Translations under genes and position numbers: made by a program
Shown here: in pieces, positions 54,995 to 61,009 of the stretch
Numbering within the stretch: the first letter of the stretch is position 1
Layout of the letters: each line of letters opens with the position of its first letter
Source: Obrimoposthia wandeli
Lineage: Eukaryota
Assembly: GCA_977020255.1 (NCBI GenBank)
Contig: CDROCS010000933.1
Location: 1 to 64,000 of the forward strand
Direction of reading: 5' to 3'
Length of the DNA stretch: 64,000 nt
Notes under the pieces: model-generated
Told to the model about the DNA's origin: nothing
Databases searched by the model: none
What the model saw: the letters and a program-made list of their open reading frames with translations, nothing else

Positions 54995-55246
54995 TTGGCC
55001 CACCTAGTTACCTATACTTATAAAAAACAAGATAAGAAAATTCCATTTTCATACCGACAGTTTCACCACATCTATGAAGCGGCGGCTGCAGAAGAAGGCA
55101 TCGACTTAACGCAATATATGATGATGGAAAAACAAGTTGAAGATGTCTCGAAAGGGACTAAATCAGTAAGAGAATTTCGTAAAAATCATTTTACTAAATT
55201 AGGTTTCAGTAACGTTTGGTTTATTAAAGACGGTATTGAAGACTAG
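54995..55246 (+). CDS. DUF2960-like small protein
   Basis: TTG start after GGAGG; TYTYK...FSY...IYEAAAAEEGIDLT...FTKLGF resembles Vibrionaceae DUF2960. Confidence 0.65.
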   Translation: MAHLVTYTYKKQDKKIPFSYRQFHHIYEAAAAEEGIDLTQYMMMEKQVEDVSKGTKSVREFRKNHFTKLGFSNVWFIKDGIED

Positions 55247-55311: not shown

Positions 55312-58122
55312 TTACGACAGTAAGGTTAAACCCGTCGGTAAGCTGTCACCAAAGATACGCTTCATTACCGTTTCATCAGACGTTTGTACTTCTTGTACTA
55401 ACGCTAACCAAGATTCCGATAATTTATTCTGCGTTAACTTTTCTATCACAGCATCCCTGACTTTATCCTGAACATCCATTTCTCTATCACCGGTCTTTCT
55501 CGCGATCATAACGGCTGCAAAGGCAATGTGCGGTTCTTTCTGCCAATTAGCCTCAAGTAATGTATTCAGCCATGTTTCCACGATATGTCGCGGGATAACA
55601 TTATGTTGGCTGCCATAAAAAGCAACACGTGATGCGATACGACCTAATGCCCACCAATGTAATTGCTGATTTTGTGGTTTGCTTAATTTAGCTAACAAGT
55701 ATTCACCAAATTCAACTTTCAGTGCCACTGGGATATGTTCTAGCGATGCTGCAAGTCGGATAATATCATCATAGCTGCGTAACTTAGCTTGGTTGATCAT
55801 TTTAGCGTGTTTGTTACTGTCTTCTACAAAGTAGATTGAAATTGTTTCGTATATTTCAATCTGTTGTTGCTCATTCAGACCACCAGCGATACGACGCCAT
55901 AAATTCCACCAATCACTCCATGACTGTGTTGATTTATTGTATTGGATCGCTGATTTAAATATCGGCCAAATCTGTTCAATACGCCAATCATCTGCAGGGT
56001 AACCAAAACCAGGGCGAAGCAAGAAACTCGTTAGCTTTAACCAATTACGTTCATGCTGTTCGGTACGGCGGCGGTTTTTAGCAAACTGTAAACAAGGTGC
56101 TACCAGTTCGCGTAATAAATCAGTATCCCAAGTATCACGTTTACCCAGACGTTTATCTAGGTCATTACGTAATGACTTAACTAACTTTGGATCACTTTTT
56201 TTACTACTTGCACCGTATACTGCTTCAATTAACTGAATTGCATCAGGCAAGTTAGGATGATGCTGTTTAATATCATTGATATTTTTGCTGTCATCATTCG
56301 ATTTTTTAGTCGCTAAACTTGGACGTACAGAGAATTCTAGTGCCCAACGTTGTTTGCTGTTGGTTTCACTCACACATTCTAACTGCAAAGTACCAATACT
56401 GCTTAGCTTGCAAGACAGGTAAACAGATTCAAAACGTTTATGGTCTTTGTGCTCAGGAATTGTAACCACGAAAGGTGGTAAAGGTGTTTTGCCTTTCAGT
56501 TGTGTTTCAAACTCTTTTTCAACGATGTCGCCAGGTTTGAAATTACTTTCATGACTGGTGGTCGCAAGATTAAAACGAATTGGCTCACCAATGGTTAACG
56601 AGAACAAACGGCTATCTAAATTGATAACTTGTTCTTCTTCTGTCCCCTTAGGTAATAGACAAATAGATTGCGATTTACCTGAGCGATCGGTTATTTCTAT
56701 GAAGTAGTTACGTGCACTACCGCCGCCAATTTGTTTTTGCTTGCCCATCTTAGCAAAACCAAATTCAACCGCGCCATAAGCAACAGACAGATCTGGATTA
56801 CCATTGTGTAACATCTGCACTTTTTGTTGCTTCCAACCAGATAACACTTTTTCGATTTGCAGTTTCACTTGTTGGCTATTAAAAATACCCCCGTTAACCA
56901 ATATTGCTGCTGGCACGACGGCAGGGTCGTAATGATCTGTCGCATCTACATCGTAATAAGTGTGGATGAATTCAGCAATGTGTTTTGAAATCGCTGGATC
57001 TGACGTATACGGTAAGCCAAATTCAACGACGGCATTTTTTCGGTGTGTTGGTAATTCGTTAAAGCCGCTGTTTGGTAAGAAACCATTAAACACCATGTCG
57101 ATGACTTCATTCTTTGTCAGTTCACATTTCTTCGATTGCGCAATCAGTTTTGAGCCACGACCTAGCAGTGTAATTGATGTTGTGCTGGGTGGTTGTTCAG
57201 ATAAAAACAGTTCTTTGGCTTGGCGTGTTTGTTGTATTAGTTGCCCTAACGCTGCAGTTTTCAAACGTTGATCAGGGGATATTCTTGATTCAACAATATG
57301 CGCTAGTGCTAAATCGATGTTATCACCACCGAGCATCAAGTGATCACCAACCGCAACACGGTTTAAATTTAATTCACCATGTGCTAATGACATTTCGATT
57401 AAACTTAAATCTGTTGTACCGCCACCTATATCACAAACAAGCATGGTTTTGTCTTGTTCGATCAAATCTGTTTTAGCCTGTTTATTACGGTGATACCAAT
57501 CGTAACAAACGGCTTGTGGTTCTTCTAATAACGTCACGTTTGTTAAGCCAACAAGATCTGCTGCAGCGAGTGTTAATGCGCGAGCCGTGTCGTTGAAAGA
57601 GGCTGGGACTGTGATGGTAATATTTTGATCGGCAAGTAGGTGATCAGGATTGTGATAATTCCAAGACGCCTGAAAGTGCGCTAGATAGCTGGCGCTGGCA
57701 ATCACTGGCGATACTTTCTGAATATTATCTTCTACAGCCCAAGGTAGGATCGCCGCTTGTGCGTCGATGCTTGGATGGGATAACCAACTTTTGGCACTGG
57801 ACACTAAGCGACCCTTGGTTTTAGTGCCTAAATCTCTTGCCCATTGGCCAACGATGACATTGGCTATCTCACCGTCAAATCGTGTTGATTGCCAAGGTAA
57901 TACACAATCCGTTGTGGCAATTTCATTGTCGTTAAAGTGATAGCGGAATGAAGGGAGTAGAGGTTTTCTTGAGACTTCGCCAGGACCAATCAATTGGTCA
58001 ACGTGAAATACAGACGCACTAGCTTGATAATCATCGATACTTTTGAAAGAAAGCACACTGTGGGTGGTGCCAAGATCGATGCCAATGACATATTGCGCTG
58101 TTTTGGAAACAGGTGAGGGCAT
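55312..58122 (-). CDS. Divergent Hsp70/DnaK-like protein with C-terminal DUF3731-like domain
   Basis: GIDLGTTHS, TVPASF, LEEPQA, DIGGGTTD, LGGDNID, NGG, PDLSVAYGA; Trp-rich C-terminal domain (FLLRPGFG, WWNLWRRIAGGL). ATG 58122 follows SD GGAG (58134 is the alternative start). Confidence 0.88.
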   Translation of the reverse strand: MPSPVSKTAQYVIGIDLGTTHSVLSFKSIDDYQASASVFHVDQLIGPGEVSRKPLLPSFRYHFNDNEIATTDCVLPWQSTRFDGEIANVIVGQWARDLGTKTKGRLVSSAKSWLSHPSIDAQAAILPWAVEDNIQKVSPVIASASYLAHFQASWNYHNPDHLLADQNITITVPASFNDTARALTLAAADLVGLTNVTLLEEPQAVCYDWYHRNKQAKTDLIEQDKTMLVCDIGGGTTDLSLIEMSLAHGELNLNRVAVGDHLMLGGDNIDLALAHIVESRISPDQRLKTAALGQLIQQTRQAKELFLSEQPPSTTSITLLGRGSKLIAQSKKCELTKNEVIDMVFNGFLPNSGFNELPTHRKNAVVEFGLPYTSDPAISKHIAEFIHTYYDVDATDHYDPAVVPAAILVNGGIFNSQQVKLQIEKVLSGWKQQKVQMLHNGNPDLSVAYGAVEFGFAKMGKQKQIGGGSARNYFIEITDRSGKSQSICLLPKGTEEEQVINLDSRLFSLTIGEPIRFNLATTSHESNFKPGDIVEKEFETQLKGKTPLPPFVVTIPEHKDHKRFESVYLSCKLSSIGTLQLECVSETNSKQRWALEFSVRPSLATKKSNDDSKNINDIKQHHPNLPDAIQLIEAVYGASSKKSDPKLVKSLRNDLDKRLGKRDTWDTDLLRELVAPCLQFAKNRRRTEQHERNWLKLTSFLLRPGFGYPADDWRIEQIWPIFKSAIQYNKSTQSWSDWWNLWRRIAGGLNEQQQIEIYETISIYFVEDSNKHAKMINQAKLRSYDDIIRLAASLEHIPVALKVEFGEYLLAKLSKPQNQQLHWWALGRIASRVAFYGSQHNVIPRHIVETWLNTLLEANWQKEPHIAFAAVMIARKTGDREMDVQDKVRDAVIEKLTQNKLSESWLALVQEVQTSDETVMKRIFGDSLPTGLTLLS

Positions 58123-58141
58123 TAAAAACTCCATATAATAA

Positions 58142-58166
58142 AACTCAGGGCTAAGTGCCCTGAGTT
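58142..58166 (-). terminator. Intra-operon hairpin/weak terminator between the two Hsp70-like genes
   Basis: Perfect 10-bp stem AACTCAGGGC-N5-GCCCTGAGTT, followed on the minus strand by TTATTAT. Confidence 0.55.
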
Positions 58167-58230
58167 AAGTACACGTGGTATAAATATATAGTATCCATAT
58201 AACGTGTGTATTGATTATGCTAAATCCTAT

Positions 58231-60054
58231 TTACTGTCTAACAGTAAGCTCGATTTCCCACGTTTCATCACTGTCGTTGGCGATAGCCTCAACTTTCAGT
58301 GTGCCCACTTCAGTCACAGTGACAGACAATGATACTGGTACGACATCACCACTATTACGGTTAGCAGAGTCAAGCGTTACTTCGATGTCTGGAAGCTGGT
58401 CAAGATCATCTGGTTGCCAGAAATCAAGGTGCGTACCCACAACATCTTCACGGCGCACTGTTGAACCGAAGAATTTAAATTTAACCGGTTGACCAACAAC
58501 GAGACCAAATTGGTAAGTTGATACGTCGTGGTTAGTGCCTTCTTCAAGACCAAATGGGGCAATACAGACTGCTTCCAGCGGTGCTTCAAAGCCAGGAATT
58601 GCTGGCATTGAGCTTTCAACACCCACGTAGTATGCGCTAGCGAGACCGCCTTTAATACGTACGCCTTTACCTTGTTTCGCATAACCGTGGTAACAAGCAC
58701 CATTGGCAACGGCAAGGTCTAGATCAATACCCGTTAATAGTTTTGCTTCTTCTTCAACGTCAGCAGTAATTAACCAGTCGTTAATAATACCGATGAGTTT
58801 AGAACTGATTGCATCAGACTTAAACACACCACCATTAAATAATACTGCGGTCGGTTTAATGAAATCACCGGCATCCGTTGCGATTGCATCGTGCTGTTTA
58901 TTCAAGAAATGCGCGATGTGTTTGGTGATTGCTGCATCTTGTGCATACGGTAAACCAATCTGTGTTAACGCCGTACGGGTACTTTGTTGCGGCATTTCTG
59001 ACACTGCAGTCGCAGGGAAGAAACCATCTAAAATAGTTTGCTTCACTTCATCGCGTGTTAGTTCTGTTTGCATTGTGCCGGCAATCAGTTTCGAACCACG
59101 GCTTGGAATAACAATTGGCATTGTATCGATATCATTATCAGATAACAGTTGCTCTTTGGCATCACGACAGGCATGGGTAATGGCTTGAATTTGCCAAGGT
59201 TGTAATTGCTTACCTTCTTGCATCAATTTCATTTTTAGACGATACGCCAGCGCAAGATCCATATTATCACCGCCAAGTAGGATGTGCTCACCTACTGCAA
59301 CGCGTGATAATGTTAAATTACCGTCTACTTCTTCAACCGAGATTAATGATAAATCGGTTGTACCACCACCTATATCAACCACAAGGATGGTATCACCCAC
59401 ATTAACTTGGTCACGCCATTCATCGCCACAGGCTTGTAACCAGCTATATACAGCGGCTTGTGGTTCTTCAAGTAGGTTTAAATGTTTAAGGTTTAGCGCT
59501 TGTGCGGCTTGCGCTGTTAAGTTACGCGCGGCCGGATCGAACGAGGCCGGAATCGTGATTGTCACATCTTGTTCTGAGATTGGTGCATCTGGGTGTGCAT
59601 AGTTCCAAGCGTCAGCTAAATGGCTTAAGTACTGACTTGTTGCCGTCACTGGTGAGATTTTTTCAACTTCATCAGGGCTTGAGAAAGGTAAGATCGAATC
59701 ATGTGGGCTGACGGTAGCATGGCTTAACCAGCTTTTAGCGCTCGACACCAAACGAATCGGTGTTTTAAGACCAAGGTTACGTGCGACATCACCAACAAGT
59801 GTCGTATTGTCTGCGTTCCAAGGTAATGGTGTTTGATCTTTACTGATCTCATCTTCGTGTGCTTGATAGACAAAAGACGGCAGTTGATATTTTTCTGTGA
59901 CAGAACCCGGTGCAGAGAGTTGCGGGATAGCAAACAGTTGCTTTGCTACTTTATCGCCTTCTTGTTCTAAATCGATATAGGATAATACGCAGTGTGTGGT
60001 ACCTAGATCGATACCAATACTGTACTTTGCCGTTGTTTCAGTTATGTCGCTCAT
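58231..60054 (-). CDS. Divergent Hsp70/DnaK-like protein (NBD + beta domain, no lid)
   Basis: GIDLGTTHC, TIPASF, LEEPQAA, DIGGGTTD, LGGDNMD, FNGG, DLAVANGA. Confidence 0.9.
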   Translation of the reverse strand: MSDITETTAKYSIGIDLGTTHCVLSYIDLEQEGDKVAKQLFAIPQLSAPGSVTEKYQLPSFVYQAHEDEISKDQTPLPWNADNTTLVGDVARNLGLKTPIRLVSSAKSWLSHATVSPHDSILPFSSPDEVEKISPVTATSQYLSHLADAWNYAHPDAPISEQDVTITIPASFDPAARNLTAQAAQALNLKHLNLLEEPQAAVYSWLQACGDEWRDQVNVGDTILVVDIGGGTTDLSLISVEEVDGNLTLSRVAVGEHILLGGDNMDLALAYRLKMKLMQEGKQLQPWQIQAITHACRDAKEQLLSDNDIDTMPIVIPSRGSKLIAGTMQTELTRDEVKQTILDGFFPATAVSEMPQQSTRTALTQIGLPYAQDAAITKHIAHFLNKQHDAIATDAGDFIKPTAVLFNGGVFKSDAISSKLIGIINDWLITADVEEEAKLLTGIDLDLAVANGACYHGYAKQGKGVRIKGGLASAYYVGVESSMPAIPGFEAPLEAVCIAPFGLEEGTNHDVSTYQFGLVVGQPVKFKFFGSTVRREDVVGTHLDFWQPDDLDQLPDIEVTLDSANRNSGDVVPVSLSVTVTEVGTLKVEAIANDSDETWEIELTVRQ

Positions 60055-60714
60055 AGTTCCACCTCTGCTGCTGCAACGATATTGGCGTTGTGGCCTTGTG
60101 CAAGTTTAGGCAAGTTAACCTTGGTTATCTTCCAGCCTGCGTGTACTAAAATACCACGGTAAGGTGCTGAACCGAGTACGTTACCAATTAGCTTAATTTC
60201 AGATGGGTTAAAACCTTCAGCAACGGTTACTTGGCTTTCTTCTTCTTCAGTGCGAATTGGCGTGAAACTAAAGTATTCATTGATTACTTTTTTGCTGCCA
60301 GTATGAATAATACGTGCTGCGGCACCAATTTGTTCGTCAGACGCGCCGGTTAAATCTTCTTGGATAAAGTCGACAAAACGTGCTTCATTTTGGAGTAATG
60401 ATAAAAGCTGACAAGCGGCAGCAGGGCTTGCTTCTTGTAGTGGGGCTTTGATTTCGACAATCTTTTCAACTTCAACGATTTTCTCAACGTCAACGTGTTT
60501 GATCACCTCTACAATTTTTTCTACTTCTACTTCTACTTTACTTCTGCTTTACTTCTAATTTCTTTTCAACAATCTTTTCTATTTCAACTGTTTTTTTACC
60601 GCCTCAACGAGCGTGAGTAGTAATAGCAGATCACGAGGAAAGTGCGAACAAGGCAATATGCGCTGCATCAGGGCCTGTCGGTAGTTCAGAGATATTTGTA
60701 AGGTCGAAGTTCAT
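60051..60714 (-). pseudogene. DUF2760-domain protein; 5' membrane-anchor part frameshifted, C-terminal domain intact (60051-60506)
   Basis: ATG 60714 gives MNFDLTNISELPTGPDAAHIALFALSS*. Hydrophobic and VEKIVE segments continue in shifted frames into LLSLLQNEARFVDFIQEDL...IGAAARIIH...LVHAGWK. ATGA overlap with the downstream Hsp70 gene. Confidence 0.78.
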
Positions 60715-61009
60715 ATATTTTACTCAAGTTTGTATAAATCAATATTACCCACGATTTTACCATAATTATTTATGTTACGGAGCATAATGTGATTTTTTAG
60801 CTTATTTAGCCTGTACTTAGGGACAAAGAATAGCCATTTTAGCGGGAATAATTAGAAACGTATTTTCAAGCTTCGTGGTTTTTTAAAATAAATAAAAAAA
60901 AGCCCAGTACAAATCCATGTAATGAGCTTAGGGAAATTGGTATAGCTGTAATATTAAATATAGTAAATTATTTACGTATATCAAATTACCGTTATATTAA
61001 TGCGTGACG

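Follow-up and report, generated by a model that had tools for sequence, protein, structure and literature searches.

A conserved, uncharacterised Hsp70-type module pairs a DUF2760 gene with two lid-less ATPase genes

We analysed a 64,000-nucleotide (nt) stretch of DNA, here called the window (positions 1 to 64,000 of contig CDROCS010000933.1, assembly GCA_977020255.1, Obrimoposthia wandeli), which carries an operon of three genes encoding a DUF2760 protein, a 607-amino-acid (aa) Hsp70-like protein and a longer Hsp70-like protein. An initial annotation of the sequence had described a co-oriented operon of three genes; three co-oriented open reading frames (ORFs) are present on the minus strand, and Pfam assigns DUF2760 to the first, HSP70 to both of the larger proteins and DUF3731 to the last (Table 1). 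The DUF2760 and DUF3731 matches score above the Pfam gathering threshold (170.9 and 319.4 bits, respectively, against a cut-off of 25), and the HSP70 match in the 607-aa protein covers only the part that forms the nucleotide-binding domain (NBD). The ATGA overlap claimed at 60051–60054, in which the stop codon of the DUF2760 gene meets the start codon of the 607-aa gene, can be read directly in the sequence. The likely start of the third gene is 58122, giving 936 aa, rather than 58134, in view of the conserved GGAG-N6-ATG found there. The evidence below establishes that the module is a real, conserved and uncharacterised variant of the Hsp70 system.

Table 1. Features of the DUF2760–Hsp70 operon and their positions in the window.
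Feature	Position	Strand	Evidence or remark
Three co-oriented ORFs	55312-60714	minus	DUF2760 gene, 607-aa Hsp70-like gene, long Hsp70-like gene
Disrupted 5' part of DUF2760 gene	60507..60714	minus	Broken by +4, -1 and +16 nt; first stop 60631-60633
Open DUF2760-domain frame, 151 aa, GTG start	60051..60506	minus	Pfam PF10816, 1.2e-50
607-aa lid-less Hsp70-like ATPase (NBD, short linker, SBD-beta-like domain)	58231..60054	minus	PF00012, 9.4e-16
G+C-rich ten-pair hairpin, then T-rich run, between second and third genes	58142..58166	minus	
Long Hsp70-like protein	55312..58134	minus	ORF 940 aa; 936 aa from 58122; PF00012, 9.6e-17
SBD-beta-like segment of long protein (residues 476-600)	56335..56709	minus	VIA-align and Foldseek matches
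DUF3731 match (residues 692-938 of long protein)	55321..56061	minus	PF12531, 2.7e-95
Candidate promoter, best sigma-70-like match 5' of operon	60957..60984	minus	TTGATA-16-TATATT, 10/12
SBD-beta, beta-type substrate-binding domain.

Both large proteins are Hsp70-type ATPases composed of an NBD, a linker and a beta-type substrate-binding domain (SBD-beta), without a helical lid. The altered ATPase motifs quoted in the initial annotation are all present and are conserved across the family. In an alignment of 11 loci from several genera with Escherichia coli DnaK, both paralogues keep the equivalents of DnaK D8, K70, P143, R151, E171 and D194-GGG-T199-x-D201, and this conservation, the Pfam matches and VIA-align Z scores of 29–33 to the NBDs of Hsp70 and Hsp110 place the ATPases in the Hsp70 superfamily (PF00012). 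The equivalent of DnaK R167, a key contact of the J domain, is not conserved in the same alignment. The hydrophobic VLLL linker is missing, as had been noted, and in its place stands a linker of the form (L/I/V)-(K/R)-I-(G/K)-G-G that is conserved across the family. The best NCBIfam match of both ATPases is HscA, at 79–83 bits (1e-22 to 1e-23) against cut-offs of 620–708, and the DnaK models give 51–56 bits (1e-14) against cut-offs of 648–822, which places the proteins outside the DnaK and HscA equivalogs. As a reference for the window we used its closest relative, a locus from a Moritella dasanensis metagenome-assembled genome (MAG) with an intact 214-aa DUF2760 gene (L099). Relative to this locus, the 607-aa gene (98.1% nt identity) differs at 30 synonymous and 5 nonsynonymous codons and the long gene at 64 and 6; with 94 synonymous against 11 nonsynonymous differences in all, both ATPase genes are under purifying selection.

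Residues 13–604 of the long protein align with the 607-aa protein over its full length (36–38% identity), and because the whole of the shorter protein is accounted for in this way, it stops after the beta domain, as the initial annotation had stated; from this full-length paralogy we infer that it has an SBD-beta of its own. An AlphaFold2 (AF2) model of the long protein (predicted local distance difference test score (pLDDT) 77) comprises an NBD (residues 15–462), a linker (463–475) and an SBD-beta (476–600) that is docked on the NBD as in ATP-state DnaK and BiP, followed by a disordered segment (602–624) and a helical, Trp-rich domain (629–928). VIA-align superposes this model on ATP-state BiP (5e84_A) with a Z score of 32.6 and a root-mean-square deviation of 3.9 over 473 residues (10–603 against 24–527), and on Sse1 (3d2e_A) with a Z score of 29.2 over 476 residues, the similarity stopping at about residue 608; Foldseek gives template-modelling (TM) scores of 0.70–0.72 to lid-truncated BiP and DnaK. 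The helical SBD-alpha lid is missing from both proteins, the shorter ending at the beta domain and the longer continuing into disorder and then DUF3731.

The description of this last domain as Trp-rich, helical and DUF3731-like holds: the C-terminal 316 residues contain 13 Trp and are predicted to be all-helical, with about 17 helices in the AF2 model and motifs of the type W-W-x-x-W-R-R-x-A-G-G-L and W-W-A-L-G-R-I-A-S. A search of the PDB with the DUF3731 profile returned only non-significant matches, to an ARM repeat (E 0.69) and to FliG. An ARM/HEAT-like solenoid is plausible.

The DUF2760 domain encoded in the window is 95% identical to Moritella DUF2760 proteins of 212–214 aa. Relatives begin with a short acidic tail, one hydrophobic helix of about 17 residues and a basic patch, and continue through a flexible V/E/K/I-rich repeat spacer of variable length into a conserved domain of about 125 residues that ends in an invariant A-E-V-E-L. 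This arrangement fits an N-out, C-in membrane anchor, and the positive-inside rule would place the domain in the cytoplasm. Membrane anchoring, proposed in the initial annotation, is thus supported by the sequences of relatives, but in the window the anchor is out of frame. In an AF2 model of the domain (pLDDT 78), helices (residues 28–78) are followed by seven strands, and an invariant L-P-K-(L) motif (residues 132–135) lies in an exposed, low-confidence loop that could conceivably serve as a ligand of the SBD.

The solved folds nearest to this model, at a weak level of similarity, were exchange factors. Eight of the top ten Foldseek matches among 350,542 chains were GrpE or GrpEL1 from several organisms (E 0.1–0.6, TM about 0.3), and in VIA-align, GrpE entries were the only near-top matches that spanned the whole domain (residues 26–151), with 95–102 residues aligned at Z scores of 4.3–4.8, below the level at which the tool is reliable. 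We regard this as a real but weak architectural resemblance between predicted and solved structures and not as evidence of homology, made more interesting because the DUF2760 gene adjoins an Hsp70 gene. The N-terminus of the relatives consists of a transmembrane helix and a repeat spacer, not of the long GrpE-type helix.

To gauge conservation, one genome per species was scanned and 80 loci were retained, which together with the Moritella loci gave 81 distinct loci. At least 578 species representatives have a DUF2760 relative, among them members of Vibrio, Photobacterium and Aliivibrio. A 607-type Hsp70 gene directly follows the DUF2760 gene, often overlapping it, in all 81 loci, and the long paralogue comes next in 62, which therefore hold the full triad, with a median gap of 114 nt. 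Seven loci lack the long paralogue despite at least 3.2 kilobases (kb) of downstream sequence, and 12 were too short for the third gene to be scored. The neighbourhood survey that the initial annotation had proposed as a check thus found the triad to be recurrent, and this conserved gene order supports its view of a self-contained module. The two-gene loci (L010, L026, L051, L054, L076, L077 and L082) are mostly from Methylococcales or unclassified gammaproteobacterial MAGs. In 15 loci of this DUF2760-plus-one-Hsp70 kind, the gene immediately upstream, in the same orientation, encodes a small secreted protein to which Pfam assigns no family; L077 has a gene for an M48 (HtpX-like) peptidase about 1 kb upstream of its DUF2760 gene.

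Among the 81 loci there was no J-protein, GrpE or defence gene that recurred in different lineages, and a tblastn search of the 64-kb window found no DnaJ, GrpE or canonical DnaK, in keeping with the earlier statement that the locus has no J-protein or GrpE gene. J-domain-like matches occur 3.5–10 kb upstream of the module in three Photobacterium loci (L013, 626–763; L074, 6409–6540; L050, 17–145); they are not adjacent to the module, and none was seen in other genera. A fourth module gene was considered and rejected: clustering the neighbours of the 81 loci yielded no additional gene that was conserved across lineages. Instead, the flanks are lineage-specific. Vibrio loci have RNase T-like and TerB genes and a divergent CHASE-GGDEF gene (GGDEF in 21 Vibrio loci), Photobacterium loci have an ABC ATPase gene and, in 13 loci and in this genus only, an HNH endonuclease gene, and the rsmF/pqi and tatD/holB/tmk flanks show conservation in Moritella but not beyond it. 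The module is syntenic within Moritella and within Vibrio; its contexts differ between orders.

In the window itself, Pfam identifies housekeeping genes on both sides, with mltG, tmk, holB, tatD and a DUF2960 gene on one and rsmF and pqiB on the other. The DUF2960 gene (54995–55246) converges on the end of the operon, holds the same position in all Moritella loci and is 100% identical in nt sequence to its counterpart in the reference locus, from which the neighbouring genes differ by 2–3%. Judged by its sequence, the window DNA comes from a Moritella; an M. dasanensis MAG encodes a protein that shares 99% identity with the 607-aa one. Sigma-70-like matches are no more numerous around the operon than in shuffled sequence. 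The hairpin between the second and third genes is kept in the Moritella relatives with which it was compared (L001 and L005); a candidate for a partial terminator or a stability element, it could lower the amount of third-gene transcript.

The assertion that the function of the module is unknown stands, as DUF2760 and DUF3731 are named in no paper found by our literature search. In V. cholerae, VC1375–1373 is likely to be the orthologue of the module; the divergent GGDEF gene in 21 Vibrio loci fits this assignment, since the neighbouring VC1376 is presumably a GGDEF protein. VC1373 and VC1374 are annotated as DnaK-related, and the VC1373–1375 operon emerged from a screen for genes repressed in biofilms (PMC9201469). 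The operon is transcribed: HapR binds the VC1375 promoter, which points away from VC1376, and activates it directly, both in vivo and in vitro (PMC10328515). Bacterial DnaK derivatives beyond the main ones are called largely unexplored 'dark matter' in a 2026 review (PMC13580251). A 'DnaK-related protein' peptide reported from Photobacterium angustum (PMC3706606) is absent from all proteins and loci that we collected, and that paper was not used.

We propose that the module is a membrane-tethered chaperone machine with DUF2760 as its dedicated cofactor, and we put the probability of this reading at about one half. Such an Hsp70 machine would be specialised for work at the cytoplasmic face of the inner membrane. 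The DUF2760 domain would be dedicated to the 607-aa ATPase, tethering it to the membrane and probably acting on its nucleotide cycle as GrpE does on that of DnaK; the L-P-K-(L) loop possibly helps by sitting in the SBD, as the LPPVK of IscU does in HscA. The long paralogue would bring a further helical domain, probably a solenoid, for binding a client or a partner; some lineages would do without this paralogue. Likely clients would be membrane or membrane-proximal proteins.

Several observations weigh against this proposal. The scores behind the GrpE resemblance are weak in both Foldseek and VIA-align, and profile comparisons lend it no support: when 36 DUF2760 domains were compared by hhalign with 15 diverse GrpE sequences (E. 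coli, two Enterobacterales database matches and twelve from plasmids and chromids), the probability was 0.1%, and a search of the PDB with the DUF2760 hidden Markov model (HMM) found no GrpE. The orthology of VC1375–1373 rests on annotation and the shared GGDEF neighbour, not on sequence. Finally, it is the anchor that is broken in the window, with both ATPase genes left intact. We reject homology to GrpE at the level of sequence on the strength of the HMM and hhalign comparisons; Pfam (PF01025) and NCBIfam scans of DUF2760 likewise gave no GrpE match. A word search with E. coli GrpE returned, among the matches listed, only near-identical enterobacterial sequences.

A more specific version of the proposal casts DUF2760 as a membrane-anchored nucleotide-exchange factor of the GrpE type that also tethers a pair of lid-less Hsp70s working without a J-protein. 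The module would then be a bacterial counterpart of the membrane-tethered Hsp70 motors of organelles and would pull on or remodel proteins at the inner membrane, with the DUF3731 solenoid selecting clients. On balance we consider this version unlikely.

The alternative that weighs most is that the module is decaying in this strain, with DUF2760 a pseudogene and the operon no longer one functional unit, a serious possibility towards which we nevertheless do not lean. The DUF2760 gene had been annotated as open from 60714, which proved incorrect. Relatives' proteins (206–216 residues) start with MNFDLTN, and the ATG for the same start is present in the window at 60714; it opens only a 27-codon ORF that stops at 60631. 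Compared with the reference locus, the window has gained 4 nt near 60627–60636, lost 1 nt after 60605 and gained 16 nt in the repeat at 60533–60562. The same three indels appear against the Moritella genome L001 and against contigs from two public runs, so that every relative compared differs from the window by three frame-breaking changes within about 110 nt; contigs of four runs in all showed relatives without these indels. The only stretch still open runs from 60506 to 60051 (151 aa from a GTG start), leaving the sequence for the membrane anchor out of frame. Ten neighbouring genes checked were all collinear and unbroken, and because none of the indels falls at a homopolymer, general sequencing noise is unlikely. 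These findings count in favour of decay. If the sequence is correct, the strain makes at most an anchor-less, soluble 151-aa DUF2760 domain.

Against decay, neither the DUF2760-domain ORF nor either ATPase gene is interrupted, and the ATPases carry the excess of synonymous differences described above. The last indel also falls inside a tandem repeat, and since the window's own version of 60380–60800 is absent from the public runs searched (best 34% of words), the disruption may be either real or a local assembly fault in the repeat. The tandem repeat (60519–60561), in the spacer-coding part of the gene, combines units of 6 nt, which read GTAGAA on the coding strand, with units of 11 nt. Its length varies between strains, and the window's difference is not a multiple of three. 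The domain itself differs from the reference at 3 synonymous and 4 nonsynonymous positions; decay of the domain was considered and rejected, as most window residues at differing positions match other Moritella proteins.

We also considered that the ATPases might not be chaperones at all and might instead be nucleotide-dependent switches or scaffolds, held at the membrane by a single-pass partner and organising an envelope process. PilM, which has the actin/Hsp70 fold, is held by PilN, and FtsA by its own membrane helix. The NBD of the long-protein model matches PilM, FtsA, MreB and ParM at Z scores of 20–26 in VIA-align, the lid, which in Hsp70s stabilises client binding, is missing, and DUF2760 is a predicted single-pass membrane protein in relatives. 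However, true Hsp70s match clearly better, and over the SBD-beta as well, a domain missing in actin-like proteins (Z 32.6 over 473 residues to BiP), and the residues P143 and R151, which serve Hsp70 allostery, are retained. We judge a switch or scaffold role to be improbable.

About as improbable, in our estimation, is the idea that DUF2760 does not assist the ATPases as a cofactor but is itself what they act on, a dedicated client or a target under their regulation, comparable to IscU with HscA or sigma-32 with DnaK; the machine would thereby govern the state of the DUF2760 membrane protein. The invariant L-P-K-(L) in its exposed loop, the ranking of HscA as the best NCBIfam match of both ATPases (1e-22 to 1e-23, compared with 1e-14 for DnaK) and the strict linkage of the DUF2760 and ATPase genes would all fit a client. 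Nevertheless, the HscA scores of about 80 bits are far under the cut-offs of 620–708, the DUF2760 domain has no recognisable activity that could be regulated, and the structure it most resembles is that of an exchange factor.

An anti-phage or conflict system, with the Hsp70-like protein and its helical repeats as a sensor in the manner of CnuD of Type III CoCoNuT, is very unlikely: the layout of CnuD is the same as that of the long protein (PMC11090510), both ATPases match the PADLOC profile PDC-M61B and module contexts differ between orders, but those matches reach only 21–22 bits (1e-5 to 2e-5, about 90 NBD residues), DUF2760 has no PADLOC match, no McrB/McrC-type or other effector gene recurs over the 81 loci (the HNH gene being confined to its 13 Photobacterium loci), the flanks are housekeeping genes in the window and lineage-specific elsewhere with synteny within Moritella and Vibrio, and the ATPase motifs are intact where the Walker-A-like motif of CnuD is described as degenerate. 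Pfam likewise detected no McrB/McrC-like (DUF2357) gene among the window neighbours or the ten most recurrent neighbour clusters of the 81 loci. The defence role that the initial annotation had entertained is accordingly not supported.

Almost everything known about Hsp70 biology in bacteria comes from DnaK, HscA and HscC, and the module described here is widespread, has intact ATPase sites and its own membrane partner, and includes no J-protein. If that partner proves to be an exchange factor and a tether, Hsp70 cycles could run with a different set of cofactors, a new system for membrane proteostasis or remodelling would come into view and a function could be given to two Pfam DUFs. V. cholerae, whose probable orthologue of the module has a known response to quorum sensing, allows direct tests.

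Among known systems, one of the closest is DnaK–DnaJ–GrpE. As in that system, the module NBD has all of the catalytic and allosteric residues examined, the SBD-beta is docked on the NBD in the model, and a small partner gene lies beside an ATPase gene, the modelled partner being, at a weak level of similarity, nearer to GrpE than to other solved folds. Unlike DnaK, the module has no SBD-alpha lid, VLLLD linker, conserved R167 or J-protein, and it has two paralogous ATPases, which score about 50–83 bits in NCBIfam against cut-offs of 620–1019; its partner is predicted to be membrane-anchored (in relatives) and has no detectable sequence similarity to GrpE. HscA–HscB–IscU and HscC–DjlB/DjlC offer a parallel of another kind, in which divergent Hsp70s are encoded alongside a dedicated partner; DjlC is membrane-anchored, and the LPPVK loop of IscU, the client signal of HscA, recalls the invariant LPK(L) loop of DUF2760. 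Those systems need J-proteins and keep a shortened lid, whereas the module has neither.

The combination of a normal-sized and an enlarged Hsp70 paralogue, known here from the genes, resembles the pairing of Hsp70 with Hsp110-type proteins (Sse1, Grp170/Lhs1). Unlike Hsp110 and Grp170, the long protein carries its extra domain after a disordered linker, and that domain is DUF3731, not an extended SBD-alpha; also unlike Hsp70/Hsp110 pairs, the module dispenses with its long paralogue in some lineages. CnuD of Type III CoCoNuT has an Hsp70-like NBD and SBD followed by HEAT-like repeats, with McrBC-like genes alongside and degenerate ATPase motifs (PMC11090510). Compared by description and not by sequence, its domain layout is like that of the long protein, whereas the module has intact ATPase motifs and a DUF2760 partner and lacks McrB/McrC-like partners. 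The holding of an Hsp70 at the membrane by a partner, as proposed for the module, has its closest likenesses in the organellar assemblies Tim44–mtHsp70–Mge1 and Sec63–BiP–Lhs1.

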